From: Bugula neritina
Taxonomy: Eukaryota > Animalia > Bryozoa
Assembly: GCA_964035545.1 (NCBI GenBank)
Contig: OZ037766.1
Coordinates: forward strand, 28,937,673-29,001,672
Direction of reading: 5' to 3'
DNA length: 64,000 bases
Position 1 is the stretch's first letter. Every line of letters begins with the position of its first letter. Positions 23,601 to 64,000 of the stretch are shown piece after piece. Position numbers and translations under genes: made by a program. The notes under the pieces were generated by a model. That model was not told the origin of the DNA. It saw only the letters and a list, made by a program, of their open reading frames with translations, and ran no database searches.

Positions 23601-23902
23601 CAAGAGTAGGACATAAACATTGTTATTTATAGCATCACAGAAATTGAATCTAATTTTTCCATACCTTATAAACAATTCATTACTTTTTTCAGTCTTAGAA
23701 ATGTATGTTATATTACTAAATATTATTTCTTACCTATCTCCACTTTGTCCTGCTTGAGTAGCAGGACTACCAAATATTAACACTCAATAAAACAATTGGA
23801 TTGAAAGTATTAATTTGATAATTTGCTATAGCCACCAAACTGTCAGCTTTTAAATAGAAGATGGAAACATTAATTCTTACCTTCAGAATAATAAACCTTC
23901 AT
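20693..23902 (-). CDS. Short-chain collagen C4-like protein, copy B1; intact, ~424 aa
   Basis: Exons 23902-23881 (MKVYYSE), 23261-23041 ([12 protein letters not shown]..coiled coil), 22620-22530 ([13 protein letters not shown]), 22248-22177 (GVRG..GRDG), 22025-21648, 21389-21108, 20901-20693. In phase with no stops. Confidence 0.9.
21418..21626. repeat. Compound (TG)n/(TGTA)n microsatellite in the B-type intron (copies at 32380-32731, 42658-42840, 53695-53953)
   Basis: Directly visible. Length differs between copies; source of the HT/CV ORFs. Confidence 0.95.
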
Positions 23903-26900: not shown

Positions 26901-27310
26901 ATACTGTCATTAAATTGTGTGTATTAAAGCCTAGTGTAGTGTATGAGCTACATTCTGTAAAATTAAAGTAAACAAAAATAAACGTATTATTAACAAGGCT
27001 TATAGCCACTTTCTTCTTCAGTTAAGGGGTTTTTAATTAGGAATCTATTGTACCAAAATTAAAGATTTGATTAATACAATTTTATAACAGAGTAAGTAAA
27101 TTAAAGAAAATAGAAATTTATAAATAGTGCAGCTTGAAAATTTATTTTGCTTCGCAATTTAAATAGTTTCTCAACATAAATTATTTAAAAATGTTATTCT
27201 TACAAAAGCTTTATAATAAAATACAATAAAATATGTTAGTCATACATTTTAGTATTAGATTGAAAAATCAATGGTAGCACACTATTCTACTTTTGTTAGC
27301 ACAAAGCTAT

Positions 27311-30088
27311 TTACTTAGAACAAACAACACAAGTAAGCTGTTTGTTTGCATCATATGGTGTACATTGTCCAGTAGTTCCCTGCCCTGAACAATCAGTTCT
27401 GACAAAGTAGAACAGAGCTCCATCTGAATTACTACTCATCCCTGTGAGGTACTCAGGATACTGATCTACACACTCATATGTAGCTGGATGGGCATGGATA
27501 TCACGCTCAGTCATTAGGTAACCTAAAAAGTATATAGAGGGAAGTTGAACTCCACTGTAAATACTAATTATAGCAACATTATATCTTTGTATGTTGTGGC
27601 AAGTTATATCATAATTCTTTGCTAAATTTTATAGGATAGCACTACTTCACCAAGCATGGTAATGGCAAATACATGAGTGGCGTATATTTAGCTTTTCAAA
27701 CTCTAACCTATAAATAATTCATAAGAAGAACTTTAAAACAAGTTGGCAAGAAACTCACAAATTATGATTAAATGATCTTACGCATTGAATGTACTACTCC
27801 TAATAATAAGTTCAATAATTATAGTTCATAATTTCTAAAAGCAATGTCAACATTTAGTAGATTGTATATTAATTATTGCCAACTTTCAAGAAAAATTAAT
27901 CTCAATTACCTTCATACTCCTTTGTCCACCCAGATGGACAAGATCTCTTAGCTGGAATCATCATAAGAGCTGGTCTGTTCTCTGTATAACATCTGGCACA
28001 TGGTACATTTTGGTTAAAGGTTGAAGTTGAAAAGATTCCATAACTATAAGATTGATATTCTGCACCATTTATAGCAGAGCCTCTAAACTCGCCATTAGTG
28101 TAAGCTTTGTTATATTGTGGATCAAAGGGCATACACTGGTAGTTAACTCCACCTCCAGTTTTTCCAGAATATTCACCACCAGCGAATCCTGACAAAATAT
28201 AACTGTCTTAATGGTATAAATGGTTGTACATATCATTAGTAAACATTACCTAATCAGTTTAACACTTAATTAGTTAGTTTACTTTGTGCTTAATAGCTAG
28301 TACGCTACTTAGAGGTAATAGCTGATCTATATTATTGTCATATTTTTCATATATAACTAAACTGTGATGTAAAATTATAATGATCAAATTCACCTTCATA
28401 AAGTACAGTTGATTGAGAGCCACAAGACTTTCTTCCCCATCTTACATAAACAACACCTCCTTCAACATGTGCCACATTGCCTGGAGCACCTTTTACTCCT
28501 TTCATGCCAGAAGCACCTTTCATTCCTTTAGGACCAGCTGCACCTGTAGCACCTTTTATGCCAGGATTCCCATTTTTTCCAGGTATTCCAGAAGCTCCTC
28601 GAGTTCCATTGACACCAGGCAAGCCAGAAATACCAGGTGATCCTAAATCTCCTTTAGCTCCTTTAAACCCAGGAACCCCTGTTGGACCTGTAAGTCCGGG
28701 ACTACCGGGTAATCCATCTCTTCCTATTTATTAAAAGTAACTAAAAGCTGCAGTTATACGCAGAACAGTATTCGCTAAAATGACATATAGGACACTTGTA
28801 ATCTGATGTAAATTTTAATTGATGAGTTAAGTTTCTCTCACCTTCACGACCATTTGCACCATCTTTACCATCATCTCCATCGCTACCATCTCTACCATCT
28901 CTACCATCTCTACCATCTTTACCAGAAACACCTCTAACCCCTAACACACATTGAGAACACATGATGACAAAATTAAGAATATAGCCTTTTAATGTCCTAC
29001 ACGTGTTAATGCATATAGCACCTTTAATGTGAAAATACAAGTCCTTGCAACAGCATGGAATTTTACAAAATTTAGGTCTTACAAACATTTACAGCCGTAT
29101 TATTCAATAAAAAATACAAACACCTACAAACTCAGTATTCACTAATATTCTTGGAAATACAATAAATTATGCAACTGGTAGTGGTTAAGTGCATGGTTCA
29201 TATAGTATTATTGGCTGCGCTAGCAATAGCTCTCATATTAGTAGCATCAGTACAAATAGTATTTATAGTAGAAGTGATAGTGGTAGTGGTAGTGGCAGTG
29301 ATAGTGGTAGTGATAGTGGCAGTGGTAGTGGTAGTGATAGTAGCAGTAGTAGCTGTGGTGGCAACATGAGCACCTATAAATTATAAAAGTCAAGTTTTTA
29401 CCGAAAATACAAAACCGAAAACTTTTTTCCGTCACTTTCACTAAAACTTTTCGTTTTAGGCAATTCTCCAGTCAACAGCTTGAAAAAAAAGAAAATGTAG
29501 CAGATAGAGCTGTCACTTTATACTTAAATCTACTCATTGAGTACATTATTATATGCATGCATTGTATTTTATATATTATTGTATAGTATTGCATGTTATT
29601 GTAGTAAATAAAATAGCAACACCGCACACATGAAGTCTTTATAAAGCTTCCAAACCCCTTTCTGACAAATAAATACAAAATTTAAATGTTTAAAGTATTC
29701 TTTGAGTAAAATATAATTACTTCTTGAGAGCTCTAGGCAATCCCAAAACAACTATAGCTGATATATAGTTCTAACTTACAGCTTTGAGTAAGGAGTAAAC
29801 TGTTGCTTGTAACTCTACAATAGTTTTCTGTTGAGTTTCAGATTCTTGCTGTTGAAGCTCTAATTCTTGCTGTAAAGCTTTATCTTTTAGCTGTAAGACT
29901 TCAACTTGCTGCTGTAAAACTCTCTTTTGTTGCTGATGCGTTTTGTTCTGTTGTTTGAGAATAACAATCAGTTCTTCTCTTTGCTCTGCCAGCAACTCTC
30001 TAACACCCTCTACATCATAACTTCCAACACCAGTTGAGTATCCAATCAGAGAACAGAGTGTGACCAAAGTTACTACTGGAACACGCAT
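27311..30088 (-). pseudogene. Short-chain collagen C4-like copy C1; frameshifted
   Basis: Exons 30088-29780, 29478-29402, 28940-28842, 28723-28394, 28188-27910, 27522-27311. Exon 2 is 77 nt instead of 91 nt (lacks CTGGAACAAATATG, a 14-bp deletion near 29410), which shifts the frame before the collagen region. Confidence 0.82.
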
Positions 30089-30527
30089 CTTTTATGGTGT
30101 TCTTTTACCAAAACTTTTATGAAATCAAAGCACAAGGACACATTCGAACTGTCTATAACACTTTCTTCTCGGGACCTCGTTTAGTAAAGCCTTCTGACTC
30201 ACCTCTAGCACACTATGATTAGAAACAGAGTTTATACAACTTTAATATTCACGAAGAGCCAATGATTAAGTCACATCTGTTAGCTGGACCCAGCTGCTGT
30301 GTAATCAATCTCTCTACTTTATTCAGTTTGCTCATGAGATAGGAATAAGTCTTTTGTTACATTATTATAAAATATACATTTTATTGCCATTTGGTTTTGT
30401 ACTGTACCTATTATCTTTCCAAAATAATACACAGTTTCTTCTTTTTTATTTAATTTGAATAATTTGCTCTTTAATTTTTAAACTGAAAATACTTGTTCAA
30501 AGATTCTGGTTGCTTATAGGATTCTTA

Positions 30528-30790
30528 TATACATTGTTATTGTCTACTATCACTATAATATTGTTATTGTTTACTATCATTATATTGTCATTGTTTACTA
30601 TCAATATATTGTTATTGTTTACTATCACTATATTGTTATTGTTTACTATCAATATATTGTTATTGTTTACTATCACTATATTGTTATTGTTTACTATCAC
30701 TAAATTATTATTGTTTACTATCACTATATTGTTATTGTTTACTATCACCATATTGTTATTGTTTACTATCGCTACCCTGTTATTTTTTAT
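30528..30790. repeat. 24-bp minisatellite (ACTATCACTATATTGTTATTGTTT)n upstream of C-type genes
   Basis: About 11 units here, ~4 at 41388-41500, ~11 at 51836-52090 and ~9 at 62927-63130, with a degenerate version at 19752-19860. Source of the IVIVNNNN ORFs. Confidence 0.93.
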
Positions 30791-31644
30791 CAATATTATA
30801 GGCCTACTATAGTTTTCATTTGGCTATTTTGTTATTTTCTGGCACTTGGTGATGCACTTTATTTTTGATTATGAACGTCATCACTATAGCTTTAAAACTT
30901 TGTTTTACTTATAGAATGTGTACCATAACTTATAGCTGCACATTAAACTTATTATTTTTATAAAGTCACACGCCTAACCCAACACCTAACCAACCTAACC
31001 TTAACCTACCCCCTCCAACTTTGGTGTAAAGAAGAAGTTATTAGAATTCCCTTTGACATCAGTATTTATATATTTGAAAAACTCAACATTCTGATCTTAT
31101 CATCTCATAGAAAAACTCAGTTTAAGAATTTTTTATAGACTGTATATTGAGGTATTCAGTTTAAGAAGGAAGTTCCTAGTTCATATCAGCTCATAAAATA
31201 ACTAATAATCATCAGTATTCAGTCACATTCAGTGTTATCTGATTCAATCATCAGTTCTGAGTACAAGTTTATTATCAGAATAATAGAAATATTTCATTTT
31301 TTTTAAGTAAACTCATGCATACTAATTTTAGGTATGCTTTGCTTTTATGTCATTTCTCTTTTACCTAAATTTTTTTATAAAAAGCAGTACCAGCTTTTAC
31401 TTACTAACAGCATCCCAGCTGTTTTATTTGCTTTTTTCTATGAGAACTAAAATGTTTTACAATAAAAATATATTACACTTTTTATTGCGACTAAAGTTAT
31501 AGATAATGTTGTGGCTGAGATAACATTTTGTGTAATATAAAATGATATATTCTGATGAAGTAGTGAAAAATTGAAAGCCAATGTCACAGACTTCATTGCT
31601 TACAAGTGATAGAAACTGTTGCACTTTTGCAATAGCAAGCCTGC

Positions 31645-32656
31645 TTATTTAGAACAAACAACACAAGTTAGCTGCTTCTTGTCATCATATGGTGGACAGT
31701 GTCCAGTAGTTCCCTCTCCAGAGCAATCAGCTCTGATAAAGTAAAACAGAGCTCCATTTGTATTACCACTCAGTCCTGTTATGTACTCAGGATTTTGATC
31801 TACACACTCATATGTAGTTGGTTTATGATCATGTCTTGAAGTCATAAGGTATCCTGAAAACACAAGCATATAAAACATTTTAAAGGAATTTAGACATGGG
31901 CAGTTTCTGTGAGCTTAAAGCAGTCAATAATGTGCCAGCCGGCAACAATGAAACTAGTAGTTGATATTATGTAATATAAACCTATAATCACACCATTGTC
32001 TATACTACCATCTTCTATACATACATTTCTAATTATCTGCTGCTATAGAGCTACAGTACCTTCATATTCTTTTGTCCACCCAGATAAACAAGATCTCTTA
32101 GCTGGAATCATCATAAGAGCTGGTCTGTTCTCTGTATAACATCTGGCACATGGTACATTCTGGTCATGAGCTGTATTAGAGAATATTCCATAATGTCTTT
32201 TAGATTGATATTCTGCTCCGCCCATGAAAGAGCCAGAAAAATCATCACCAGTGTACACTCTGTTATACTGTGGGTCAGGGGGCATGCATTGGTAGTTGAC
32301 TCCACCTCCACTGTGGGTATAATGTGATCCTCCAGCAAATCCTGTATGTTTACAAATGTAAAAACATAATGTGTTTGGGTGAATGTGAGTGCATGTGTGT
32401 ATGTATGTGTGTGTATGTGTGTGTATGTGTGTGCATGTATGTATGTGTGTATGTGTGTGTATGAGTGTGTATGATGTGTATGGTGTGTGTATGTGTGTAT
32501 GTTTGTATGGGTGTATGTATGTGGGTGTATGTATGTGGGTGTATGTATGTGCGTGTATGTGTGTGCATGTATGTATGTGTGCATGTGTGTGTATGTGTGC
32601 ATGTGTGTGTCTGTGTGTGTCTGTGTGTGTATGTGTGTGTATGTGTGTGTATGTGT

Positions 32657-32719
<63 letters not shown>

Positions 32720-34677
32720 CGCGTGCGTGTGCAGTTGTTTTCAACACCCAACCTTTATATAATAAAGTTGATTCTGCAATGCAGCTAGTTCTTCCCCATC
32801 TTGTATAAACAGCACCTTCTTCAACTTTATCAGATGGTGAACCTTTGATACTCTTTTCTCCTTTGCTCCCTGTTAAACCTTTCAAACCAACTTGTCCAGG
32901 TAATCCTGCTCTGCCAGTGGCTCCTTTTTGTCCAACAGCTCCTTTTGTTCCTTTCAGGCCTGGTGCACCAACTTCACCTTCTGAGCCTTTATCTCCCTTT
33001 AAACCTTGAGAACCGGGAAATCCAGCATTTCCAGGTAAACCAGTAATACCCACATCTCCTTTGAAACCCTTTGGACCCATTAAGCCAGGTGCACCAGGAA
33101 CTCCATCTCTGCCTGTATGAAGCAAAGCTTAATTCAAAAGTAAAACCTACAGGAACGGATTTCCTTAAATACTTACACTATGTTGTCTGTTATGAGAACA
33201 GCAACACTAAACTATTACCCACCACTAACACTGAGATATACTACGTACATGCATGTATCTTACCATCACGACCAGCAGCTCCATCTCTTCCATCTCTGCC
33301 ATTGCTACCATCTTTACCACTCAACCCCCTAACACCTTAAAAGCAAAGTATGCATGATATATTATAGGTCGCTGCTTTCTCACTTTTTGAAAGCAAACCA
33401 ATGAATTAATGCGTCATTCAAAACTGTGCGAATAACAGCTTTTGCAAAATTATACTCTAGAGCTTGAATAAATACAAATATAATTAAAATTGGGGTGCAT
33501 GAAGGTGCAATTAGGCTTACTTTAGTTTGGATGAAAAACTTTGAACAAATATGTTCAGGACAATTTGAAAAAAACTTTTACAAATTTAAGCAAATCACTT
33601 TCTAAACTATGTTTACCAAAGATGCAAATTTTCTCAACCAAATCACTTAAATCTCCTTCTTTTGGTCTTTCAATGTTTGTTTCTTTTGGCAATTTTCCAG
33701 TCAATAACTAAAAAAACAGATTGTATTTCAGTAATCATATTCTTGCGAGTGCAAATTTTTCTAAAACTACATCTATAGTAACACAATATAAGTATTGTAT
33801 TATCTCATAATACACAGTGTCTTGTAGCATTTCAATTTTTTTCTCTTGCAGTTCTATCTGCTGCTGCTGGGCTTCTGTCTGCTGTTTGACAACTTCAAAT
33901 ATTGTTGCTTCCAGCTTTTGCTGTTGCTCTTCTAATAACTTTTTAAATTCTTCCCCATTTCCACTGACCAGATTTGCAGGTAAGCAAGCGAGTAATAAGA
34001 TGCAGAGTGCAGTTACTAAAAATATTATAAGTAGATAACCAAATGAGTCATACATAGAACTGTTATACATTACATTTTGTAAGTTGACATATAATACTTG
34101 TATAGCAATTTAATTATGTTAAATTCTAGTTATATTATAATTGCAATTTGTATAACAAATTAAAAAGCATTACTTTATTAGGATTTGAAATACTTTACAT
34201 AAGATATTTTATTGGCATTGCTACATTTTTATTCCATTCATTTTGTTAAAGTTTACATTATAGTTCAAAGCAGAATAATCTAAAATACTGCAACCATGCA
34301 TATTTGTAGGATTATATTACATAGTTTTTCCTCAACTATATTGCTAAGAGCCTAATAGCAAGAGCAGGACATAAACATTAATGTTATTTATAGCATCACA
34401 GAAATTGAGTCTAATCTTTTCATTCCTTATAAACAATTCATTACTTTTATCAGTCTTAGAAATGTATGTATATTACTAAATATTAATTCTTACCTATCTC
34501 AATTTTGTCCTGTTTGAGTAGCAGGACTACCAAATATTAATACTCAATCAATATTCATCAATGAAAACAACTAGATTAAAAGTAATAATTTAAATGTTTG
34601 TAGCAGCTACTGAACTGTCAGCTTTTAAATAGAAGATGGAAACATCCATTCTTACCTTCAGAATAAGAAACCTTCAT
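31645..34677 (-). pseudogene. Short-chain collagen C4-like copy B2; exon-2 donor deleted
   Basis: Relative to B1, a ~332-bp deletion at ~33810 (AAT microhomology) removes the SLLNA codons and the GTAAGT donor, so the reading frame runs into a stop at 33735. There is also a Gly->Ser change in the triple helix (GEKSIKG). Confidence 0.75.
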
Positions 34678-37600
34678 CTCTATCTCTTAAATGCACATGG
34701 CAGATGCGAAATCTATAATGAAATGAATTGTTGGTATATAATAAATTGGTTACATTCAAATTGTCTAAACTAATCCAATCAATGGAGAGCTTTTTATTGC
34801 TGCTATAGATCCATGAACATACGATAAATAGATTAAAGAAAGAGTATATAACTTCTTTTATCTTTTTTGTCATTCGACTCTCAATTGAAAACTCAATGTT
34901 ACTAGTTTGCATTTCAAACCAGGTTATATATTATTTTGTGCTACATTTTTGTTATATTGCAAAGAAAACTTGTTAAACCACTGTTTAATCTATAAATACA
35001 TAAACCTAAATATATACCAAAACTTGCTTATACATAGCAACCCCAACCAGTGACCTATTGAAATATATTAGCACATTTAAATTGCTAAAATATTAAAAAT
35101 TTAACAGTTAACTTTATCATGTTTGTGGAAAAGCATTTGAATAACTTCAAGGTAGTTTATTTATATGTATGTGTATATGTATATGTATATTCATGCTAGA
35201 ATGTAGATATGTGTTCACATAGGTAAATGTTGCAATTTTTTCACCAGTAAAAATGCTTTAAAAGATATTTTCGACAACACCTGCTATAAATTAGAGGTGG
35301 GCATAAGTTGAATTGAATATATATATATGCATGCATTTTGAAAAGTACAATAAGTTGCATAGCTACAGGTTAAGTAACACTACGCAAAGCTATAGCAGAG
35401 AAAAAAGGTTGATTAAACAAAACCATAAAACTTAGCTGTAATTTCTTTCAACATCTGTGTACATGTATACAATGCCTGTACGTGTGTCTGCGTGTGTATT
35501 ATATATGTGCATGCATACATGTGCACTTCTCTAACAAAGAGTTTGTAGCTGTTTTATGGAAACTAATTTTATGTTATACTCAAGAAAAACAATTCTGATT
35601 GCTTAATAAAAATTAAAAATACTGCCTGAAAAAGATGTAAACCTAATTTGCTCATGTAAACTGTGCTTTTAAGCTTGCAAAACTTTTCTACGACAAAATT
35701 ATATAACAATGTAACTATTCCATTACAAAAGACAGTTTATAAAATGTATACCCAAATGTTTTTATTTTTAGACTGTATATTGAGGTATTCAGTTTAAGAA
35801 GGAAGTTCCTGGTTCACATCAGCTCATAGAATAACTAATAATCATCAGTATTCAGTCACATTCAGTGTTATCTGATTCAATCATCAGCTCTGAGTACAAC
35901 TTTATTATCAGAATACAAAAAAAGAATTTAGTTGTTTTATATTAACTCATGTAAATTAACTTAAGGTATGCTTTACTTTTAAATAGTTTCTCTTTTACCA
36001 GAATAATAAAAATATTTTATTCTCCTTATATAAACCCATGTTTTAGGTATGCTGAGTTTTTATGTCATTGCTCTTGTGACTAATTTTTTTGATGGTAGGA
36101 AATAGCTGCATATTTAATTTGTAACAATATTACAATACTGCACACCATGGCACTTTTACTGTCATAAGTGTACAATAAGTGAGTGGTGAGTAATTAGTGA
36201 AATCTAAGTATTGGATTTCAGATAAAGTTGCTGGTGGAATAGGCTGTGTTCTTTGACAGTGTCCAAGCTGGAACTCATAGACAAAGACTATATATATGCT
36301 CAAAAATGAAGTTTTCTGCACCCAAACTAATTTACATTTGTGCAGTTAATCACGGCTGTACTTATTTTTAGCATAATGTAATGCTTAGTATATAATACTG
36401 TTTGCTATTCAAAATAGCATGTGGTAACTGAATGAAAAATGCATTTACCACATCGTCATATGCTACCATATTACGGTTGAATACTATAAGTAGAATCAAG
36501 CAAAAATTTAGACTTTATTTAAATTTGCTACAGTATATATGCACCTGAAATAATTTGCTTGCTTTAACTTCCTGCAGTAAGTTATGAGGTGCTCAGAATA
36601 AAATTCAACAAGAACCGTCATTAAGTTTTCAAGGCCAAGAGTTGACTTTTCTGACATCATAACTGTCTGATTGCTGAATGCAGTATAGTCCAGTTTGTGC
36701 AATGTGGCGTTGAAGCTATTTGCTAGCATCTCGAAAAACTTGTTGAGAGTTCAGTAAGTATTCTGAATATGGCATTAGTGCTTATCTATATGAGTCTGAA
36801 TATTTCACAACTATGTTCCAGACTACAGAGTCAAAATAGTCTAAAGTTAACCACACAATGTCTAATATTGCCAACATAATATGTAGATTTACCTGGCATA
36901 CAAAAACTGCTTAAGTCTGGACCTTCAAGTTATTAAAAATGAAAATAAATAGCGAAATTATATTTGCTAAAACTTGATTTAGTATACCTATATTTTCTTA
37001 AAAGAATAGGATTATTAATTTTATCTGTGCTATATTTTTTACAAGCTGCAAGAAATGTCTTGAATGCAGCTTTTCAGCAAAATTAGTTGACTGAGGTATA
37101 TTTTGCTTTTATTTTGCTACTGAAAACTCATATCTGCTATATATTGTATTGTAGTTTATTAGTAGGCTAGTATATCATTATAAACACAGTATATGACACC
37201 ATCCTTTGACCAAAAAGACTTTCTTATTATAGCAAGCAAGGCATAAATCAAAGCACAATCTGAAGTTGCATTCATATCTTCACAGTCTCCAGTCCGAAAC
37301 TCAATTTGGCCGAGTTGAAATTTTAATAAGTTGCATTGGACTCTAAAAGCTTTTTGCTACTGACCAAAATTATCCCTTAACTGATATCTGCTATAGCCAG
37401 TAACTATAATATTTTAGTTGATTGGTAATATATCAATATATACTTAGCATGATGTGGCATCATCCGTTAAACAGGATGAAATGATAGAAGGATTCTGTGT
37501 AACGAGCAAGGTATAAATCAAAGCACAATCAATCTAAAGAGAATGTGTGGTGTGAGCAAGTTAGAGTCAAGGTAGAACCAATGAACATATTTTAGATTAT

Positions 37601-38125
37601 CTAACTCAGAATTTAGTTTTATAGCAATGACTCCACAAAACGTGACATATGCCTTTGCTTTTGTGAAAATCACTCTCCTTATATATTATAATGCACAATA
37701 CTGTCATTAAATTGCATGCTATAAAATTAAAGTAAACCAAGATAACATAAATTAACAAGGCTTAACCACTTTCTTCTTCAGTTAAGGGGTTTTTAATTAG
37801 GAATCTATAATGGTACCAAAAACCAAAGGTGTGATTAATACAATTTTATAACAGAGTAAGTAAATTAAAGAAATCAGAAATTAATAAATAGTGCAGCTTG
37901 AAAATTTGTTTTGCTTTGCAATTTAAATAGTTTCTCGACATAAATTATTTAAACATGTTATTCTTACAAAGAGCTTAATTATAATAAAATACAATAAAAT
38001 ATATTAGTCATAGCTACTTGACTTAACTGTCTTACATTTTAGTATTAGATTAAAAAATCAATGGTAGCACACTATACTTAATTAAAACTATAAACACTAT
38101 TCTACTTTTGTTAGCACAAAGCTAT

Positions 38126-40948
38126 TTACTTAGAACAAACAACACAAGTAAGCTGTTTGTTTGCATCATATGGTGTACATTGTCCAGTATTTCCTAACCC
38201 TGAACAATCAGTTCTGACAAAGTAAAACATAGCTCCATCTGTGTTATCACCCAGTCCTGTAAGGTACTCAGGATATTGATCTACACACTCATATGTAGCT
38301 GGATGAGCATTGATATCACGCTGAGTCATTAGGTAACCTGAAAAAGTATATAGAGAGATGTTGAACTCCACTAAAAACATTACTTATAGCAACATAATAT
38401 CTTTACATATTGTGGCAAGTTTTATCATAATCCTTTGTCTAACCTTTATAGGATAGCACTACTTCAGCAAGCATGGTAATGGCAAATACACTAGTGGCAT
38501 ATATTTAGCTTTTCAAACTCTGATCTATAAATGATTCCTAAGAAGAACTTTGAAACACGTTGGCAAGAAACTCACAAATTCTGATTTAATGATATTTGGC
38601 ATTGAATATACAACTCCTAATAAGTTCAATAATTCTAGTTCATAATTTCTAAACGCAATGTCAATATTTAGTAGATTATATATTAATCATTGCCAACTTT
38701 CAAGAAAAATTAATGTCAATTACCTTCATACTCCTTTGTCCACCCAGATGGACAAGATCTCTTAGCTGGAATCATCATAAGAGCTGGTCTGGTCTCTGTA
38801 TAACATCTGGCACATGGTACATTCCGGTTAAAGGTTGAAGTTGAAAAGATTCCATAACTATAAGATTGATATTCTGCACCATTCATAGCAGAGCCTCTAA
38901 ACTCGCCGCTAGTGTATACTCTGTTATATTGGGGGTCAGGGGGCATGCACTGGTAGTTGACTCCACCTCCAGTGTTTGTATAATATTCACCACCAGCGAA
39001 TCCTGACAAAATATAACTGTTTTATTAGTATAAATGGTTGCACATATGATTAGTAAACATCACTTAATCATGCAGTTCAACACCTAATAAGTTAATTTAC
39101 TTTGCGTTAGCTAGTACACTTTTTAGAGGTAATAGCTGATCTACATTGTCATATTTTTCATATATAACTAAACCTATACTGTGATGTATAATAATGATGA
39201 TCAAATTTACCTTCATAAAGTAAAGTTGATTGAGAACCACAAGATTTTCTTCCCCATCTTACATAAACAGCTCCTCCTTCAACATGTGCCACATTGCCAG
39301 GAGCACCTTTTATTCCTTTCATACCAGAAGCACCTGTAGCACCTTTTGCTCCAGGATTCCTATTTTTTCCAGGTATTCCAGAAGCCCCTTGAGTTCCATT
39401 GACACCAGGCAAACCAGAAATACCAGGTGATCCCGAATCTCCTTTAGCTCCTTTAAACCCAGTAGCCCCTGTTGGACTTGTAAGTCCGGGACTACCGGAT
39501 AATCCATCTCTCCCTATTTATTGAAAATAACTAAAAGCTGTTATACACAAAACAGTATTTGTTAAAATGACATAAAGATGCTTGTAATATGATGTAAATG
39601 TGAATTGAAGAGTTAAGTTTTGCTGTCCATCTTTACCATCTCTGCCATCTTTACCATCATCTCCATCTTTACCATCTTTACCATCTTTACCATCTTCTCC
39701 ATCTTTACCATCTTCTCCATCTTTACCATCTTTATCATCTTTACCATCTTTACCATCTTGGCCATTTTTACCATCTGCACCATCCTTACCAGCAACACCT
39801 CTAACCCCTAACACACATTGAGAACACATGATGACAAAATTAAGAATATAGCCTTTTAATGTCCTACATGTGTTAATGCATATAGCACCTTTATTGTGGG
39901 AATACAAGTCTTTGCAACAGCATGGAATTTAACAAAATTTAGATCTTACAAACATTTACAGCCGTATTATTCAATGAAATATACAAACACCTACAAACTA
40001 AGTATTCACTAATATTCTTGGAAATACAATAAATTGTACAACTGGTTGTGGTTGAGTGCATGGTTAGTATATAATATTATTGGCTGCGCTAGCAATAGCT
40101 CTCATATTAGTAGTATCAGTACAAATAGTATTTATAGTAGCAGTGATAGTGGTATAGTGGTAGTAGCAGTGATAGTGGTAGTGATAGTAGCAGTAGTAGC
40201 TGTGGTGGCAACATGAGCACCTATAAACTATAAAAGTCAAGTTTTTACCAAAAATACATATTTGTTCCAGCAAAAACGAAAACTTTTCTCCATCACTTTC
40301 ACTAAAACTTTTCGTTTTAGGCAATTCTCCAGTCAACAGCTTGAAAAAAAAGAAAATGTAGCAGAGAGAGCTGTTACTTTATACTCAAATCTACTCATTG
40401 AGTACATTATTATATGCATGCATTGTATTTTATATATTATTGTATAGTATTGCATGTTATTGTAGTAAATAAAATAGCAACACCGCACACATGAAGTTTT
40501 TATAAAGCTTCCAAACCCCTTTCTGACAAATAAATACAAAATTTAAATGTTTAAAGTATTCTTTGAGTAAAATATAATTACTTCTTCAGAGCTCTAGGCA
40601 ATCCCAAAACAACTATAGCTGATATATAGTTCTAACTTACAGCTTTGAGTAAGGAGTAAACTGTTGCTTGTAACTCTACAATAGTTTTCTGTTGAGTTTC
40701 AGATTCTTGCTGTTGAAGCTCTAATTCTTGCTGTAAAGCTTTATCTTTTAGCTGTAAGACTTCAACTTGCTGCTGTAAAACTCTCTTTTTTGCTAATGCG
40801 TTTTATTTTGTTGTTTGAGAATAACAATCAGTTCTTCTCTTTGCTCTGCCAGCAACTCTCTAACACTCTCTACATCATAACTTCCAACACCAGCTGAGTA
40901 TCCAATCAGATAACAGAGTGTGACCAAAGTTACTACTGGAACACGCAT
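38126..40948 (-). pseudogene. Short-chain collagen C4-like copy C2; multiply inactivated
   Basis: Exon 1 has CAG->TAG (40795-40793) plus a 1-bp deletion. The exon-3 donor is deleted at ~39620, and there is a Gly->Arg change in the helix (GKNRNPG). Head exons are still open. Confidence 0.88.
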
Positions 40949-42361
40949 CTTTGTGTTTTTTTAACTAAGCTTTTACAAACTCAGATCACAAGGACACATT
41001 AACACTGTCTATAACACTTTCTTCTTGGGACCTCGTTTAGTAAAGCCTTCTGACTCACCTCTAGCACACTATGATTAGAAACAGAGTTTATACAACTTTA
41101 ATATTCACGAAGAGCCAATGATTAAGTCACATCTATTAGCTGGACCCAGCTGCTGTGTAATCAATCTCTCTACTTTAATCAGTTTGCTCATGAGATAGGA
41201 ATAAGTCTTTTGTTCCATTATTATAAAATATGCATTTTATTGCCATTTGGTTTTGTACTGTACCTATTATCTTTCCAAAATAATACACAGTTTCTTCTTT
41301 TTTATTTAATTTGAATAATTTGCTTTTTAATTTTTAAACTGCAAATACTTGTTCAAAGATTCTGGTTGCTTATAGGATCCTTATATACATTGTTATTGTT
41401 TACTATCACTATATTGTTATTGTTTACTATCACTATATATTGTTATTGTTTACTATCATTATATTTTTATTGTTTACTAGCTATCACTATACCCTGTTAT
41501 TTTTCATCGATATTATAGGCCTACTATAGTTTTAATTTGGCTATTTTGTTATTTTCTGGCACTTAGTGATGCACTTTATTTTTGATTATGAACGTCATCA
41601 CTATAGCTTTAAAACTTTGTTTTACTTATAGAATGTGTACCATAACTTACAGCTGCACATTTAACTTATTATTTTTATAAAGTCACACGCCTAACCCAAC
41701 ACCTAACCAACCTAACCTTAACCTAACCCATCCAACTTTGATGTAAAAAGGAAGTTATTAGAATTCCCTTTGACATCAGTATTTATATATTTGAAAAACT
41801 CAACATTCTGATCTTATCATCTCATAGAAAAACTCAGTTTAAAAATTTTTTATAGACTGTATATTGAGGTATTCAGTTTAAGAAGGAAGTTCCTGGTTCA
41901 TATCAGCTCATAAAATAACTAATAATCATCAGTATTCAGTCGCATTCAGTGTTATCTGATTCAATCATCAGTTCTGAGTACAAGTTTATTATCAGAATAA
42001 TAGAAATATTTCATTCTTTTTAAGTAAACTCATGCATACTAATTTTAGGTATGCTTTGCTTTTATGTCATTTCTCTTTTACCTGAATTTTTTTATAAAAA
42101 GCATTACCAGCTTTTACTTACTAACAGCATACCAGCTGTTTAATTTGCTTTTTTCTATGAGAACTAAAATGTTTTACAATAAAAATATATTACACTTTTT
42201 ATTGCGACTAAAGTTATAGATAATGTTGTGGCTGAGATAACATTTTGTGTAACATAAAATGATATATTCTGATGAAGTAGTGAAAAATTGAAAGCCAGTG
42301 TCACAGACTTCATTGCTTACAAGTGATAGAAACTGTTGCACTTTTGCAATAGCAAGCCTGC

Positions 42362-45116
42362 TTATTTAGAACAAACAACACAAGTAAGCTGTTTCTTGTC
42401 ATCATATGGTGGACAATGTCCAGTACTTCCATACCCTGAACAGTCAGCTCTGATAAAGTAAAACAGAGCTCCATTTGTGCTACCACTCAGTCCTGTAATG
42501 TACTCAGGATATTGATCTACGCACTCATATGTAGTTGGTTTAAAATCATGTCTTGAAGTCATAAGGTATCCTGAAAACACAAGCATATAAAACATTTTAA
42601 AGGAATTTAGACATGGGCAGTTTCTGTGAGCTTAAAGCAGTGAATAATGTGCCAGCCGTGTATGTGTGTGTGTGTATGGTGTGTGTGCGTGTGTGCGTGT
42701 ATGTGTGTGCATGTATGTATGTGTGCATGTGTGTGTATGTGTGCATGTGTGTGTCTGTGTGTGTCTGTGTGTGTATGTGTGTGTGTGTGTGTATGTGTGT
42801 GTGTGCGTGTATGTGTGTGTATGTGTGTGTATGTGTGTGCAGTTGTTTTTAACACTCAACCTTTATATAATAAAGTTGATTCTGCAATGCAGCTAGTTCT
42901 TCCCCATCTTGTATAAACAGCACCTTCTTCCACCTTATCAGATGGTGAACCTTTGATACCCTTTTCTCCTTTGCTCCCTGTTAAACCTTTCAAACCAACT
43001 TGTCCAGGTAATCCTGCTCTGCCAGTAGCTCCTTTTTGTCCAACAGCTCCTTTTGTTCCTTTCAGGCCTGGTGCACCAACTTCACCTTCTGAGCCTTTAT
43101 CTCCCTTTGAACCTTGAGAACCTGGAAATCCAGCATTTCCAGGTAAACCAGTAATACCCATATCTCCTTTGAGACCCTTTGGACCCATTAGGCCAGGTGC
43201 ACCAGGAACTCCATCTCTGCCTGTATGAAGCAAAACGTAATTCAAAAGTAAAACCTACAGGAACGGATTTTCATAAATACTTACACTATGTTGTCTGTTA
43301 TGAGAACAGCAACACTAAACTATTACCAACCACTAACACTGAGATATACTATGTACATGCATGTATCTTACCATCACGACCAGCAGCTCCATCTCTTCCA
43401 TCTCTGCCATTGCTACCATCTTTACCACTCAACCCCCTAACACCTTAAAAGCAAAGTATGCATGATATATTATAGGTCGCTGTTTTCTCACTTTTTGAAA
43501 GCAAACCAATGAATTAATGCGCAATTAAAAACTGCGTGAATAACAGCTTTTGCAAAGTTATACTCTAGAGCTTGAATAAATACAAATATAATTAAAATTG
43601 GGGTGCATGAAGGTGCAATTAGGCTTACTTTAGTTTGAATGAAAAACTTTGAACAAATATGTTCAGGACAATTAGAAAAAAACTTTTACAAATTTAAGCA
43701 AATCACTTTCTAAACTATGTTTACCAAAGATGCAAATTTTCTCAACCAGATCACTTAAATCTCCTTCTTCTAGTCTTTCAATGTTTGTTTCTTTTGGCAA
43801 TTTCCCATTCAATAACTAAAAAAAGCAGATGGTATTTTAGTAATCATATTCTTGCTAGTGCAAATTTTTCTAAAACTACATCTATAGTAACACAATATAA
43901 GTATTGTATTATCTCATAATATTATAGTATAACAATAGCTGCATTATTTCAAAAATCATGAAAAAGGATCAATTAGTACTTATGTTGTTCAACAAAGCTA
44001 AATGCTAAAATCTAAAGACTAACTGCTTTATGTTGAATTGGCATTCAAATGCACGTTTGAAAAGCAAATATTGTTCATTATAATATAATGTAAATTATAT
44101 TTTACATTGTATAGCACAATTCAGTTCAATGATACCAAGTTTAAGCTGGGTTGACTTTTTACAACATTCACTGCACTTTAATTACAGTAAGTTCTGCTAA
44201 AATACAACAAAGAAAAGGCATCCTTTGTAAATACTTACAGCGTTGAGCAATGAATACACAGTGTCTTGTAGCATTTCAATTTTTTTCTCCTGCAGTTCTA
44301 TCTGCTGCTGCTGGGCTTCTGTCTGCTGTCTGACAACTTCAAGTATTGTTGCTTCCAGCTTTTGCTGTTGCTCTTCTAATAACTTTTTGAATTCTTCCCC
44401 ATTTCCACTCACCAGATTTGCAGGAAAGCAAGCAAGTAATAAGATGCAGAGTGCAGTTACTAAAAATATTATAAGTAAATAACTAAATGAGTCATACATA
44501 GAACTGTAATACATTACATTTTGTAAGTTGACATATAATACTTGTATATAGCAATTTAATTATGCTAAATTCTAGTTATATTATAATTGCAATTTGTATA
44601 ACAAATTAAAAAGCATTACTTTATTAGGATTTGAAATACTTTACATAAGATATTTTATTGGCATTGCTACATTTTTATTCCATTCATTTTGTTAAAGTTT
44701 ACATTATAGTTCAAAGCAGAATAATCTAAAATACTGCAACCATATTTGTACGATTATATATTACATAGTTTTTCCTAAACTCTATTGCTAAGAGCCTAGT
44801 AGCAAGAGTAGGACATAAACATTGTTATTTATAGCATCACAGAAATTGAATCTAATTTTTCCATACCTTATAAACAATTCATTACTTTTATCAGTCTTAG
44901 AAATGTATGTATATTACTAAATATTAATTCTTACCTATCTCCACTTTGTCCTGTTTGGGTAGCAAGACTACCAAATATTAATGCTCAATCAATATTCATC
45001 AATGAAAACAATTGGATTGAAAATATTAATTTGATAATTTGCTAGCCACCAAACTGTCAGCTTTTAAATAGAAGATGGAAACATTAATTCTTACCTTCAG
45101 AATAATAAACCTTCAT
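42362..45116 (-). CDS. Short-chain collagen C4-like copy B3; lacks the 282-nt middle head exon (in-frame deletion variant or pseudogene)
   Basis: The junction at ~42658 joins the last intron directly to the (TG)n tract. The remaining exons are open, and the missing exon is phase 1-1, so LYKG|YLMTSRH splices in frame. Confidence 0.7.
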
Positions 45117-48100
45117 CTCTACCTTTTAAATGTAAATGAAAGACATGAAATCTACGAAATGAATTGTTGGTAATAAATTGATTACATTCCTTGTCTAAAC
45201 TAATCCAATCAATGGAGAGCTTTTTATTGCTGCTATAGATCCATGAACATAAGATAAATAGATTAAAGAAAGAGTACATATAATTTCTTTTATCTTTTTT
45301 GTCATTCGACTCTCAATTGAAAACTCAATTTTACTAGTTTGCATTTCAAATCAGATTATATATTATTTTGTGCTACATTTTTGTTATATTGCAAAGAAAA
45401 CTTGTTAAACCACTGTTTAATCTATAAATACATAAACCTAAATATATACCAAAACTTGCTTAACAGCCCCAACCAGTGACCTGCATGATAAAAATTGTAA
45501 AAGAGGTTTTTATTGAAATATATTAGCACATTAAAATAGCTAAAATATTAAAAAGTTAGATGTTAACTTTATCATGTTTCTGAAAAAGCATTTGAATTTA
45601 CTACTTCAACTAGATAGTTGGCTTATATGTATGTATATGTATATGTATATGCATGCCCGGATGTGGATATGTGTGCACATATAGGTAAATTTTGCAGTGG
45701 TTATGTCAGAAAAAATGCTTTGAAAGATATATTTTTGAAAACACACGCTATAAATTAGAGGTGGGCATGAGTTGAATTGAATATATATATATGCATTTTG
45801 AAAAGTACAATAAGTTGCATAGCTACAGATTAGGTAACGCTATGCAAAGCTAGCAAAGAAAAGGATGATTAAACAAAATCATAAAACTTAGCTGTAATTT
45901 CTTTCAACATCTGTGTACATGTATACAATGCCTGTACGTGTGTCTGTGCGTATATATACAAGTATGTGCATGCATACATGTGCACTTCTCTAACAAAGAG
46001 TTTGTATAGCTGTTTTATGGAAACTAATTTTATGTTATACTCAAGAAAAACATTTCTGATTGCTTAATAAAAATTAAAAATACTGCCTGAAAAAGATGTA
46101 AACCTAATTTGCTCATGTAAACTGTGCTTTTAAGCTTGCAAAACTTTTCTACGATGAAATTAACAATGTAATTATTCCATTACAAAAGACAGTTTATAAA
46201 ATGTATACCCAAGTGTTTTTATTATTAGACTGTATATTGAGGCAGTCAATTTAAGAAGGAAGTTCCTGGTTCACATCAGCTCATAGAATAACTAATAATC
46301 ATCAGTATTCAGTCACATTCAGTGTTATCTGATTCAACCATCAGCTCTCAGTACAAGTTTATTATCGAAATAATAAAAAAAAATTAGTCGTTTTATATTA
46401 ACTCATGTAAATTAACTTAAGGTATGCTTTACTTTTAAATAGTTTCTCTTTTACCAGAATAATAAAAATATTTTATTTTCCTTATATAAACGCATGTTTT
46501 AGGTATGCTGAGTTTTTACGTCATTGCTCTTGTGACCAATTTTTTTGATGGTAGGAAATAGCTGCATATTTAATTTGTAACAATATTACAATACTGCACA
46601 CCATGGCACTTGCACTGTCATAAGTGTACAATAAGTGGGTGGGGAGTTAGTGAAATCTAAATATTGGATTACAGATAAATTTGCTGGTGGAATAGGCTGT
46701 GTTCTTTGACAGTGTCCAAGCTGGAACTCATATAGACAAAGACTATACATGCTCAAAAATGAAGTTTTCTGCACCCAAACTAATTTACATTTGTGCAGTT
46801 GATCACGGCTGTATTTATTTTTAGCATAATGTAATGCTTAGTATATAATACTGTTTGCTATTCAAAATAGCAAGTGGTAACTGAATGAGAAATGCATTTA
46901 CCACATTGTCATATGCTACCATATTACAGTTGAATGCTATAAGTAGAATCAAGCAAAAATTTAGACTTTATTTAAATTTGCTACACTATATGCACCTGAA
47001 ATAATTTGCTTGCTTTAACTTCCTGCAGTAAGTTATGAGGTGCTTAGAATAAAATTCAACAAGAACCGTCATCAAGTTTTCAAGGCCAAGAGTTGACTTT
47101 TCTGACATCACAACTGTCTGATTGCTGAATGCAGTATAGTCCAGTTTGTGCAATGTGGCGTTGAAGCTATTTGCTAGCACCTCGAAAAACTCGTTGAGAG
47201 TTCAGTAAGTATTCTGAACATTGTGTTAGTGCTTATCTATATGAGTCTGAATATTTCACAACTTTGTTCCAGACTATAACAGAGTCAAAATAGTCTAAAT
47301 TAAATCTCCACAATGTCTAATATTGCCAACATATGTATATGTATATGTATAGATTTACCTGGCATACAAAAACTGCTTAAAGTCTGGACCTTCAAGTTAT
47401 TAAAAAAAAATATAATGGCGAAATTATATTTGCTAAAACTTGATTTAGTATACCCATATTTTCTTAAAAGAATAGGATTATTAATTTTATTTTTGCTATA
47501 TTTTTACAAGCTGCAAGAAATGTTTTGAATGCAGCTTTTTAGTTAAATTAGACGACTGAGGTATATTTTGCTGCTGAAAACTCATGTCTGCTATATATTG
47601 TATTGTAGTTTATTAGTAGTATATTGTTATAAACACAGTATATGACATCATCCTTTGAGCAAACAGGCTCTCTTATTATAGCAAGCAAGGCATAAATCAA
47701 AGCACAATCAAAAGTCGCATTCATATCTTCACAGTCTCCAGTCCGAAACTCAATTTGGCCGAGTTGAAATTTTACTAAGTTGCATTGGACTCTAAAAGCT
47801 TTTTGCTACTGACCAGAATTAGCACTCAACTGATATCTGCTATAGCCAATAACTATAATATTCTAGTTGATTGGTAATATATCAATACATACTTAGCATG
47901 ATGTGGCATCATCCGTTAAACAGGATGAAATGATAGAAGGCTTCTGTGTAACGAGCAAGGTGTAAACCAAAGCACAATCAATCTAAAGAGAATGTGTGGT
48001 GTGAGCAAGTTAGAGTCAAGGTAGAACCAATGGACATATTCCAAATTATCTTACTCAGAATTTAATTCTATAGCAATGACTCCACAAAACGTGACATACC

Positions 48101-48606
48101 CGTTTGCTTTTGTGAAAATCACTCTCCTTATATATTATAATGCACAATACTGTCATTAAATTGTTTGTATTAAAGCCTAGTGTAGTGTATGAGCTACATT
48201 CTGTAAAATTAAAGTAAACAAAAATAAACGTATTATAAACAAGGCTTAGCCACTTTCTTCTTCAGGTAAGGGGTTTTTAATTAGGAATCTATGGTACCAA
48301 AAACTAAAGGTTTGATTTATACAATTTTATAACAGAGTAAGTAAATTAAAGAAAACAGAAATTTATAAATAGTGCAGCTTGAAAATTTATTTTGCTTTGC
48401 AATTTAAATAGTTTATCGACATAAATTATTTAAACATGTTATTCTTACAAAGAGCTTTATAATAAAATACAATAAATTATTATATTAATTATAGCTACTT
48501 GACTTAACTGTCTTACATTTTAGTACTAGATTGAAAAACCAATGGTAACACACTAAACTTATTAAAAAATATAAAAACTATTCTACTTTTGTTAGCACAA
48601 AGCTAT

Positions 48607-53915: not shown

Positions 53916-53955
<40 letters not shown>

Positions 53956-63982: not shown

Positions 63983-64000
63983 TTATTTAGAACAAACAAC
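63983..64000 (-). CDS. Last codons (VVCSK*) of a further B-type copy (B5); the array continues beyond the window
   Basis: TTATTTAGAACAAACAAC preceded by the B-type 3' flank. Confidence 0.8.
   Translation of the reverse strand, partial: VVCSK

Follow-up and report, generated by a model that had tools for sequence, protein, structure and literature searches.

In MHC class I and class II genes, introns are homogenised and the old peptide-binding exons are reshuffled by short conversions; dN exceeds dS at the binding sites, and the differences concern alleles. Divergence peaks between tandem duplicates under gene conversion have been described for exon 5 of the red and green opsin genes and for RHCE/RHD (PMC3924837). 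Interlocus conversion with mosaic divergence in tandem paralogues has also been reported for HMA4 of Arabidopsis halleri, in the accessible part of that report (bioRxiv 10.1101/2025.10.29.685298). The locus analysed here lies in a window of 64,000 nucleotides from the bryozoan Bugula neritina (contig OZ037766.1), and its main feature is:

20042–63341, minus strand: four full tandem units of 10.6–11.0 kb each, with one B and one A spongin-type collagen gene per unit

MAFFT alignment of the full units placed their bounds at 20042–30999 (U1), 31000–41716 (U2), 41717–52303 (U3), and 52304–63341 (U4). A hybrid fifth unit begins at 63342, and window positions 1–20041 hold a neighbouring gene (U0). 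As in opsin exon 5 and RHCE/RHD, an exon of this array is far more divergent than the homogenised introns, and silent and replacement sites are both raised. Similarly to the MHC, exons are older than introns, and motifs that several copies share are combined as mosaics. The likeness to HMA4, as far as the accessible part of that report describes it, is that effective conversion is uneven along the tandem copies, so that stretches of high and low divergence form a mosaic. The pattern is of a known kind, copying between gene copies, and is not fast adaptive mutation.

The genes were assigned to a family from their exons, which were searched and aligned one by one rather than as a joined spliced protein. 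The exons of the second B gene (B2) are as follows:

33816–34070, minus strand: exon 1 (E1), signal or membrane anchor and coiled coil
32753–33112, minus strand: exon 5 (E5), Gly-X-Y repeats and the start of the head, with a Pfam Collagen match
32060–32341, minus strand: penultimate exon (E6), 282 nt or 94 codons, middle part of the head (copies: B1 21108–21389, B4 53363–53644)
31645–31853, minus strand: last exon (E7), C-terminal part of the head including the stop codon; acceptor and phase were read from the sequence, and the translation is intact

Pfam PF01391 (Collagen) matched the exon-5 reading frame with E = 5e-17, showing a short Gly-X-Y domain, and Gly-X-Y was present in the translations of every copy. 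The top database match was "short-chain collagen C4-like [Watersipora subatra]", a bryozoan protein with 60% identity, followed by an amphioxus "collagen alpha-4(IV) chain-like". Three true relatives were recovered by a word search with the read-through ORF 32043–33125, the results of which were swamped by translations of a TG microsatellite. The closest named relatives thus fall within the spongin-type short-chain collagen family (Exposito 1991 and Aouacheria 2006, as cited in PMC5395295). Like spongin short-chain collagens, the genes encode a short Gly-X-Y stalk, here with a putative collagen-IV-NC1-like head. Spongin heads carry seven cysteines shared with collagen IV plus three that are spongin-specific, and the HSQ motif is absent (PMC5395295). 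The head analysed here, counted in translations alone, has ten cysteines (end of E5, E6, and E7) and no HSQ motif, a total that would fit "7 shared plus 3 spongin-specific". Unlike in spongin short-chain collagens, however, the Pfam C4 profile (PF01413) gave no match on single exon pieces or on the homologues P0001–P0003, so that no NC1/C4-like head was detectable by profile in them. A Pfam search of single head exons gave no match, and a search of the PDB returned only chance matches by sequence and none by profile. The sole support for a C4-like head came from the Atlas feature search, in which the top-ranked clusters carried C4 (scores 0.97 and 0.93). When AlphaFold was given a 9-row alignment of the head, pLDDT averaged 33, and the model was unusable. 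A tandem array with discordance between exon and flank was not found in the spongin short-chain collagen literature that was searched.

Next, the last exon of B2 was compared with those of the other B genes and with adjacent DNA, using the following features:

42362–42570, minus strand: E7 of B3, 17 differences from B2
20693–20901, minus strand: E7 of B1, 19 differences from B2 and 17 from B3
52948–53156: E7 of B4, 0/209 differences from B2
31441–31644, minus strand: near 3′ flank of B2 (U3 homologue 42158–42361)
31854–32059, minus strand: intron 6 of B2, of which B3 retains only the first 88 nt (42571–42658)

Between B2 and B3, E7 differed at 17/209 positions (10 synonymous and 7 non-synonymous), amounting to 5 amino-acid changes with dS 0.27, dN 0.045, and dN/dS 0.17. 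The near 3′ flank differed at 2/204 and the remaining intron (31854–31941) at 1/88, so the MAFFT alignment reproduced the counts of the sequence-only reading. The exon differed significantly from flank plus intron (3/292; Fisher's exact test, p = 8e-5). All exon differences fell within 42386–42544, that is, inside E7, with 87 and 97 identical bases beyond them. The far 3′ flank (31000–31440) differed at 13/441, and the fair local contrast is therefore 8.1% in E7 against 2.2% in its surroundings (16/733), about 3.7-fold (p = 1.6e-4). Thus, of the eightfold contrast claimed previously, the exon excess is real, but the ratio is a local extreme: non-coding divergence over the whole U2–U3 unit is 5.5%, and the raw E7 divergence is only about 1.5 times that value. 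The low-divergence surroundings belong to a block of about 1 kb that has been homogenised locally. Homogenised flanks from which the exon escaped, an outcome that had been named as undoing the claim, may therefore be the case here. The silent-site difference in E7 (10/44, 0.226) is 4.1 times the unit-wide non-coding value (p = 1e-4). The near 3′ flank differed from B1 at 21/203 positions and is therefore not constrained sequence. A constrained 3′ UTR or intron behind the low flank values was ruled out, as B1 shows 10% divergence in the flank, and B5 and B6 show 7–11% in the intron. Among B1–B4, intron 6 is only 1–2% divergent. For B1 and B2, E7 differed at 19/209 and E6 at 18/282 (silent-site difference 0.16), with 4/206 in the intron between them (p = 0.003).

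Silent sites were then compared between head exons and control exons of both genes. The A-gene head exons are:

38126–38337, minus strand: E7 of A2 (copies: A1 27311–27522, A3 48607–48818, A4 59729–59942, frameshifted)
38724–39002, minus strand: E6 of A2 (copies: A1 27910–28188, A3 49203–49481, with a stop codon, A4 60330–60608)

The silent-site difference in the head exons (E6 and E7 of B and of A) was 0.11–0.27, which is 2–6 times the non-coding baseline of the same unit pair, compared with 0.3–2.2 times for the control exons E5 and E1 of gene B. The excess that the sequence-only reading had proposed to check in E6 and E7 was therefore confirmed in both genes. Exon 5 of gene B showed 0.01–0.06, at or below baseline, and A-gene E7 showed 0.09–0.22 among the A copies. 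The mean for B-gene E7 (0.195) lay above all non-coding windows of 209 nt, the highest of which reached 0.10 (empirical p = 1e-4), and dN/dS in this exon was 0.14–0.28 across copies. This silent-site excess is a stronger signal than the raw ratio of exon to flank. Because silent divergence is 4–6 times the non-coding value and dN/dS is about 0.17, selection on point mutations cannot be its source, as argued previously, and E7 has an ancestry different from, and older than, that of its flanks. A generally raised mutation rate at silent sites was ruled out by E5 and E1, which belong to the same gene and are at baseline, and positive selection on point mutations by the dN/dS of about 0.17.

Exchange among the units was evident in the array. 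Identical tracts between units ran for 460–836 nt, or 1155 nt with one mismatch, compared with 120–170 nt expected under uniform divergence. The longest is an example of recent long-tract exchange:

35001–36155, no strand: intergenic exchange block, 1/1155 differences between U1 and U2, both 8–14% from U3 and U4

Site patterns over the four units supported the splits 13|24 (101 sites), 12|34 (73), and 14|23 (21), grouped in blocks. Pairwise distances conflicted segment by segment, and unit similarity alternated with a period of two. Quartet topologies were interleaved in E7 (4:2:3), and in the flank one dominated (5:1:0); a star tree with homoplasy roughly predicts the observed quartet counts, which runs against import into the exon. 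The array is a recombinational patchwork in which non-allelic exchange clearly operates, and these data support gene-conversion mosaicism.

The array lies in a 330-kb cluster with about 25 other genes of the family, which was covered by 3.2–3.5-kb loci around each E7 and by alternate 10-kb stretches. E6 and E7 were the only array segments still alignable to these genes, and blastn of B2 against the U0 gene gave matches in E6 and E7 only. When 28 paralogues of the cluster were compared, how similar genes were in the 3′ part of E7 bore no relation to flank identity (Spearman 0.05); identity in this part averaged 84% where the flanks were unalignable. The 3′ part of E7 in B2 was 89.7% identical to that of two cluster loci (L007 and L011) and 91.4% identical to that of B3. 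Median dS was 0.38 between genes with unalignable flanks and 0.24–0.39 among B1, B2, B3, and B5. The distance between head exons is thus as great inside the array as it is among the other genes of the family. Furthermore, the last 48–75 nt of E6 were nearly invariant across more than 20 paralogues, silent sites included, and E6 dS was 0.16 in the 3′ part versus 0.55 in the 5′ part. This near-invariant end and the split in dS point to family-wide homogenisation of head-exon segments.

As for the source of the B3 states, 15 of the 17 were present in other paralogues and 2 were unique, although shared constraint leaves few positions free to vary, which inflates this shared-state count. No single donor among the paralogues accounted for B3 E7, and the PHI test within E7 was not significant (p = 0.07). 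The E7 tree was a near-polytomy in which B3 grouped with B1 and B5 (support 83/85), and AU tests rejected neither monophyly of the B type (p = 0.35) nor B2 and B3 as sisters (p = 0.18). A2, a neighbouring gene and candidate donor, had the fewest silent differences from B3 (3.5, where the mean was about 11), but this value was not significant after correction for 88 comparisons. Of the proposal that tracts were imported from diverged paralogues, exchange within the array stands, and import itself is plausible. B2 and B4, identical in E7 with flanks that differ at 0.5–1%, show no import at all, and the A-gene intron is about as divergent as the adjacent exon (7.7% vs 8.7%); both observations run against import.

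We consider family-wide exchange of short tracts among head exons, inside an array that is a recombinational patchwork, to be the best explanation, with a chance of being correct that we judge to be about even. Introns, spacers, and the collagen and signal exons are specific to the units; they would find pairing partners in no more than the four or five sister units, and long-tract non-allelic conversion or unequal exchange would hold them 2–6% apart. E6 and E7 would carry a much older, net-like ancestry, with a family resemblance that extends to the A gene 4 kb away, and short tracts would be swapped among head exons throughout the family. The U3 block (about 31000–31941 in U2 coordinates) may recently have turned U2/U4-like while holding a 160-bp patch of foreign states within E7. 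As donors would be functional genes, the changes would be mostly silent or conservative (dN/dS about 0.17). We infer from these patterns that transfer was directed into the exon, that the tracts were short, and that homology limits confined them to the exon. However, 9 of the 17 B3 states equal those of B1, whose flank is alignable, and homology limits therefore fail to explain the confinement to the exon in that case.

Import into the exon was preferred over selective shielding from homogenisation, which is possible but rather unlikely. Under shielding, which is the model used for opsin exon 5 and RHCE/RHD, the B genes would be old duplicates, the units would have been homogenised, conversions that overwrite the head would have been purged by selection favouring distinct heads, and linked silent sites would have stayed old. 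As shielding predicts, homogenisation over long tracts demonstrably takes place, both genes peak at their head exons between low flanks with flat collagen and signal exons, B3 groups with B1 and B5 (83/85), and monophyly of the B type is unrejected. Nevertheless, the peak is very sharp, the identical sequence reaching to about 25 nt from either end of the exon, and the observed exchange tracts of 0.5–1.2 kb should have broadened a selected peak. With dN/dS of 0.17 and only 5 amino-acid changes, B2 and B3 gave no sign of divergent or positive selection, nor did B-gene E7 generally (0.14–0.28), and identical heads are tolerated in B2 and B4. Current selective protection is impossible where B3 is without E6 and A3 and A4 are dead, and shielding offers no reason why depth within the array equals depth across the family.

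Head exons might also act as exchangeable cassettes, a doubtful extension in which germline micro-conversion of 10–40-nt tracts among many spongin-type genes, with the dead B3, A3, A4, and B6 copies as reservoirs, would continually renew head-loop combinations and so tune either the specificity of chain assembly or the binding of ligands. Such a process would parallel, in the germline, the way antibodies are diversified from pseudogene templates.

It is improbable that the pattern is a neutral mosaic of scattered old and young blocks in which an old patch coincides with E7 and no exon-specific process acts. Non-coding blocks of 8–15% divergence do exist (e.g., 35000–36200 and 34400–34900), and the raw E7 divergence (8%) is below that of the highest U2–U3 window; however, all four head exons show a silent-site excess in most unit pairs (empirical p from 1e-4 to 0.024), E5 and E1 of gene B do not, and both patch boundaries lie inside the exon. 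Still less probable is an assembly or polishing artefact, in which misplaced reads of paralogous exons or collapsed units would yield false exon variants and false near-identical flanks. E7 is the only part common to many paralogues, as mis-mapping would target, but its variants preserve the frame and are mostly silent, the units are 4–5% apart overall with many indels and easily resolved by long reads, and the pattern is repeated in several exons and pairs. In addition, one sequencing run, which may be of the assembly's own sample, holds 71% of the 31-mers sampled from the B3 stretch. Hypermutation aimed at the exon, or positive selection acting on newly arisen point mutations of the head, is hardly credible: some changes do lie in a family-variable loop between two cysteines, but dN/dS is 0.14–0.28 with 10 silent changes, 15/17 states already occur in paralogues with only 2 unique, and E5 and E1 of the same transcript show no excess.

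Returning to import into the head exons, the array differs from the opsin and RH systems in that its peak is narrower (about 160 bp) and recurs: two genes each have it in two exons, and the family has at least 30 members. The peak comes without the sign of a few selected replacements, and several copies are pseudogenes. Relative to the opsin/RH model, import from family members is here at least as likely as selective protection. In contrast to the MHC, dN/dS is well below 1, and paralogues within one assembly were compared. HMA4, in the accessible part of that report, involves three copies with positive selection on a new copy; here the family is large and exons are the divergent parts. Exon distances in this array are unsuitable for dating duplications, and an "accelerated" head exon is no proof of adaptive evolution, showing how divergence misleads in a large, little-studied family of invertebrate matrix proteins. 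At present the array is a clear, well-controlled example of a known phenomenon; a new mechanism is not claimed. If family-wide exchange of head exons is true, exons would belong to a family-wide pool and introns to a local pool only, the array would offer a compact natural setting in which to measure homology limits on non-allelic conversion tracts, and spongin heads could be tested for an assembly or recognition code.

Broken copies are also found in the array. A3 has a stop codon in E6, E7 of A4 is frameshifted, and B6 is broken as well. From B3 the entire E6 is missing, together with part of intron 5 and part of intron 6; the deletion ends in the TG microsatellite of intron 5, and B3 keeps the following remnant:

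42571–42860, minus strand: remnant intron of B3 from E5 to E7 (alignment gap in U2 from 31942 to about 32550)

E5 and E7 of B3 are in the same phase, and the reading frame would therefore survive E5-to-E7 splicing.

The region from 20042 to 63341 contained four complete tandem units (U1 to U4), each 10.6-11.0 kb long, and a fifth unit began at 63342, which could be aligned to the others only up to the penultimate exon of gene B. Each unit carried two genes, B and A, both on the minus strand; hereafter, B2 denotes gene B of U2, and so on. The products of both genes consisted of an N-terminal signal or anchor with a coiled coil, a short Gly-X-Y stalk, and a cysteine-rich head of ~185 residues, which was spread over the end of exon 5 (E5), the penultimate exon (E6) and the last exon (E7).

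Tandem units, and exons of U2 (window positions)
20042-30999, unit U1
31000-41716, unit U2
41717-52303, unit U3
52304-63341, unit U4
31645-31853, minus strand, gene B E7
31854-32059, minus strand, gene B intron 6
32060-32341, minus strand, gene B E6
32753-33112, minus strand, gene B E5 (collagen)
33264-33335, minus strand, gene B E4
33816-34070, minus strand, gene B E1 (signal and coiled coil)
38126-38337, minus strand, gene A E7
38724-39002, minus strand, gene A E6
39211-39513, minus strand, gene A E5
39637-39807, minus strand, gene A E4

The fifth unit (63342-64000, continued in locus L041) was a hybrid, whose match to the B units was limited to the stretch between the 3′ flank and exon 6; beyond this, it resembled an A-type gene (77% identity), and in E6 it was 15% divergent from the remaining B copies.

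Exons were searched and aligned one by one, by reference. The Gly-X-Y stalk matched Pfam Collagen (E = 5e-17). Among database proteins, the closest relative, at 60% identity, was a "short-chain collagen C4-like" protein of the bryozoan Watersipora subatra; an amphioxus "collagen alpha-4(IV)-like" protein ranked next, and an Atlas feature search placed E6 beside clusters bearing the Pfam C4 domain. Pfam C4 itself did not score against the heads, a PDB profile search with the head gave no match, and the head structure predicted from a shallow alignment (pLDDT 33) was unusable. Ten cysteines were counted in the head and the HSQ motif was absent, which is compatible with the published description of the head of spongin short-chain collagens (PMC5395295). 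The named homologues, domain layout and cysteine count suggest that the array genes encode spongin-type short-chain collagens. A DNA search of the 216-Mb assembly with E7 and its flanks gave 41 matches, 30 of which were on the window's contig at 28.75-29.07 Mb; the window itself occupies 28937673-29001672 of this contig.

Next, B2 and B3 were compared. The four-unit alignment reproduced exactly the counts of the sequence-only reading, with differences at 17/209 positions in E7, 2/204 in the near 3′ flank and 1/88 in the intron 6 remnant (Fisher's exact p = 8e-5 for exon against adjacent non-coding DNA). Ten of the 17 changes were synonymous and seven non-synonymous, resulting in five amino-acid differences (dS 0.27, dN 0.045, dN/dS 0.17). 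All were within 31669-31827; beyond this patch, the two copies were identical over 87 bases towards the flank and over 97 towards the intron. The near 3′ flank was not a constrained element, since B1 and B2 differed there at 21/203 positions; intron 6 divergence reached 7% in B5 and 11% in B6, two further B-type copies. As the far flank (31000-31440) differed at 13/441 positions, counting it in gave a local non-coding divergence of 2.2% and an exon contrast of ~3.7-fold (p = 1.6e-4). Across the whole unit, U2-U3 non-coding divergence was 5.5%, and the raw divergence of E7 was only ~1.5-fold this average; E7 was located inside a ~1-kb block of unusually high similarity, and some non-coding 209-nt windows showed 13-15% divergence in single pairs. 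Thus, the exon was more divergent than adjacent DNA as claimed, but the proposed eightfold excess was not retained on these wider scales. The true anomaly was the silent-site difference of E7 rather than its raw divergence: 10/44 (0.226), or 4.1-fold the non-coding baseline of the same pair (p = 1e-4). The exon-over-flank divergence is genuine and has sound statistical support, and silent sites reveal it more strongly and more generally.

The silent-site difference of each exon was then compared with the non-coding baseline of the same unit pair (3.7% to 5.5%).

Silent-site difference relative to the non-coding baseline
Gene B E7: 4.1-6.2x in five of six pairs; B2 and B4 identical
Gene B E6: 3.5-4.0x, B1 against B2 and B4
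Gene A E7: 2.0-4.8x
Gene A E6: 0.8-4.2x
Gene B E5: 0.3-1.2x
Gene B E1: 0.4-2.2x

The head exons were high in most unit pairs and gene B E5 and E1 were flat, and this per-exon comparison thereby ruled out a general excess of silent-site mutation as the cause. On average, silent sites of gene B E7 differed by 0.195, which is more than any non-coding 209-nt window reached in mean divergence (maximum 0.10). When 44 sites were drawn at random from non-coding windows, the resulting empirical p values were 1e-4 for gene B E7, 0.003 for gene A E7, 0.007 for gene B E6 and 0.024 for gene A E6. Between B1 and B2, E7 differed at 19/209 and E6 at 18/282 positions, compared with only 4/206 in the intervening intron (p = 0.003). 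The exon-intron contrast was weaker in gene A because its neighbouring introns were themselves 6-10% divergent.

The surrounding array was a patchwork. Parsimony-informative sites occurred in blocks: 101 grouped U1+U3 against U2+U4, 73 grouped U1+U2 against U3+U4 (nearly all within 35000-36200), and 21 supported the third split. The dominant signal was a two-unit periodicity, as though a duplication of a U1-U2 pair had occurred. Fully identical runs between units reached 460-836 nt, compared with 120-170 nt expected under uniform divergence, and U1 and U2 differed at 1/1155 bases in 35001-36155. An 18-nt duplication in gene B E5 (one extra GAVGQK) was present in U1 and U4 (21814-21859 and 54140-54185) but not in U2 and U3 (compare 32900-32950 and 43010-43060), in conflict with the dominant grouping. 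The block-wise patterns, long identical runs and shared E5 indel together indicate that non-allelic exchange by long tracts is active and recent. The B3 3′ flank had derived states in common with U2 and U4, with B1, B5 and B6 retaining the other states; in E7, nine sites placed B3 with B1 against B2 and B4.

Intron 5 of every B gene also contained a 180-340-nt imperfect (TG)n microsatellite (21418-21626, 32394-32731, 53673-53954 and, in the B3 remnant intron, 42653-42846). It stands just upstream of the head exons, between these deeply divergent exons and the homogenised collagen exon, and may be a recombination hotspot or boundary.

Head exons were further compared across the family. Flanks could be aligned with B2 in only six copies (B1-B6), the other cluster copies matching in the exon alone; within gene B, blastn of U2 against the neighbouring gene region (1-20041) gave no match outside E6 and E7. 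Across the 3′ 175 columns of E7, copies with unalignable flanks were on average 84% identical (73-92%), and E7 identity showed no relation to flank identity (Spearman 0.05). E7 of B2 was 89.7% identical to the cluster loci L007 and L011 and 91.4% to B3. Median E7 dS was 0.38 in distant pairs with unalignable flanks and 0.24-0.39 among B1, B2, B3 and B5. The E7 tree was nearly a star, in which B3 grouped weakly with B1 and B5 (83/85) and B2 was unplaced. The last 48-75 nt of E6 (32061-32135) were nearly invariant in >20 paralogues (L007-L028), including silent sites, and the adjoining introns were unalignable between paralogues; the 3′ third of E6 had a dS of 0.16, against 0.55 elsewhere in the exon. 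This invariance would be hard to explain other than by family-wide homogenisation of head-exon segments or by nucleotide-level constraint, for example on splicing.

Several copies were broken; in U3 and U4 this applied to three genes out of four. B3 (42571-42860; compare U2 31942-32550) had lost the entire 282-nt penultimate exon, the deletion ending in the intron 5 TG microsatellite. Because its E5 and E7 have the same phase, a putative E5-to-E7 transcript would stay in frame, lacking 94 head residues including four cysteines. A3 contained a stop codon in E6 (49203-49481) and, in E7, a Cys-to-Phe replacement; A4 contained frameshifts in E7 (59729-59942, 214 nt) and E5 (60829-61162, 334 nt). 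In B6 (locus L006), E7 carried a 2-nt insertion and E6 was interrupted by a stop codon, and locus L010 likewise had a stop codon in E6.

The sequence-only reading had proposed import from diverged paralogues. Its broader element, a mosaic ancestry produced by copying between paralogues, be it of the exon or of its surroundings, is supported by these comparisons. We give an even chance to the import of short tracts into the head exons: the U3 block would have been converted to a U2/U4-like state, and E7, or E7 of the B2/B4 ancestor, would later have been changed by short tracts copied from elsewhere in the family. Such tracts would be confined to the exon because the exon alone is homologous to most donors. 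Import would explain why the patch has sharp edges and why, in gene B, the excess is restricted to E6 and E7; it would also account for the star-like shape of the E7 tree, for a within-array depth equal to the family-wide depth, and for the signature of purifying selection. However, a search for the donor of B3 E7 identified none, the PHI test gave p = 0.07, and the E7 quartet counts (4:2:3; flank, 5:1:0) were close to the expectation for a star tree with homoplasy. Furthermore, nine B3 E7 states were B1-like, the B1 flank being alignable, and a silent-site closeness of B3 to A2 (3.5 differences against a mean near 11) was lost after correction for 88 comparisons.

Alternatively, the whole unit may have been homogenised apart from head exons shielded by selection, similar to the selection-maintained divergence peak modelled for opsin exon 5 (PMC3924837), where the exon likewise stands amid homogenised DNA. 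Homogenisation is demonstrably active in the array and B-type monophyly was not rejected (AU p = 0.35), but the observed tracts of 0.5-1.2 kb would give a broad peak rather than one of 160 bp, identical heads are tolerated in B2 and B4, and B3 without E6, A3 with its E6 stop codon and A4 with its two frameshifts cannot now be under such selection. We consider this explanation rather unlikely. Neutral coincidence is improbable. An assembly or polishing artefact is highly improbable; one sequencing run, possibly from the assembly's own sample, contained 71% of the words sampled from the B3 stretch. Point-mutation selection or targeted hypermutation of the exon is scarcely credible, given the low dN/dS, the ten silent changes, the flat E5 and E1, and the occurrence of 15 of the 17 B3 states in other paralogues (only two were unique), and the earlier argument against such selection held.

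Interlocus gene conversion is known to leave tandem paralogues with mosaic divergence, or divergence peaks, and this array provides a new, well-controlled instance in a known family, the spongin-type short-chain collagens.

Repeats were also observed in the array. Exon 4 of gene A was a 9-nt (Gly-Lys/Arg-Asp) repeat, 72 to 171 nt long depending on the unit. A 24-nt minisatellite was located in the spacer separating each A gene from the B gene of the following unit, with 8.6-10.6 copies in three spacers and 3.7 in the U2-U3 spacer. A dispersed repeat of ~230-300 nt (61-100% identity) occurred twice per unit, one copy lying ~0.5 kb beyond the 3′ end of each B gene and the other in the B-A spacer.

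Repeats (window positions)
28851-28940, 39637-39807, 50160-50249, 61289-61360: gene A exon 4 repeat, per unit
30533-30789, 41389-41479, 51837-52093, 62926-63131: 24-nt minisatellite
15229, 20176, 24980, 31129, 35762, 41846, 46219, 52433, 57350, 63471: dispersed repeat, each ~300 nt
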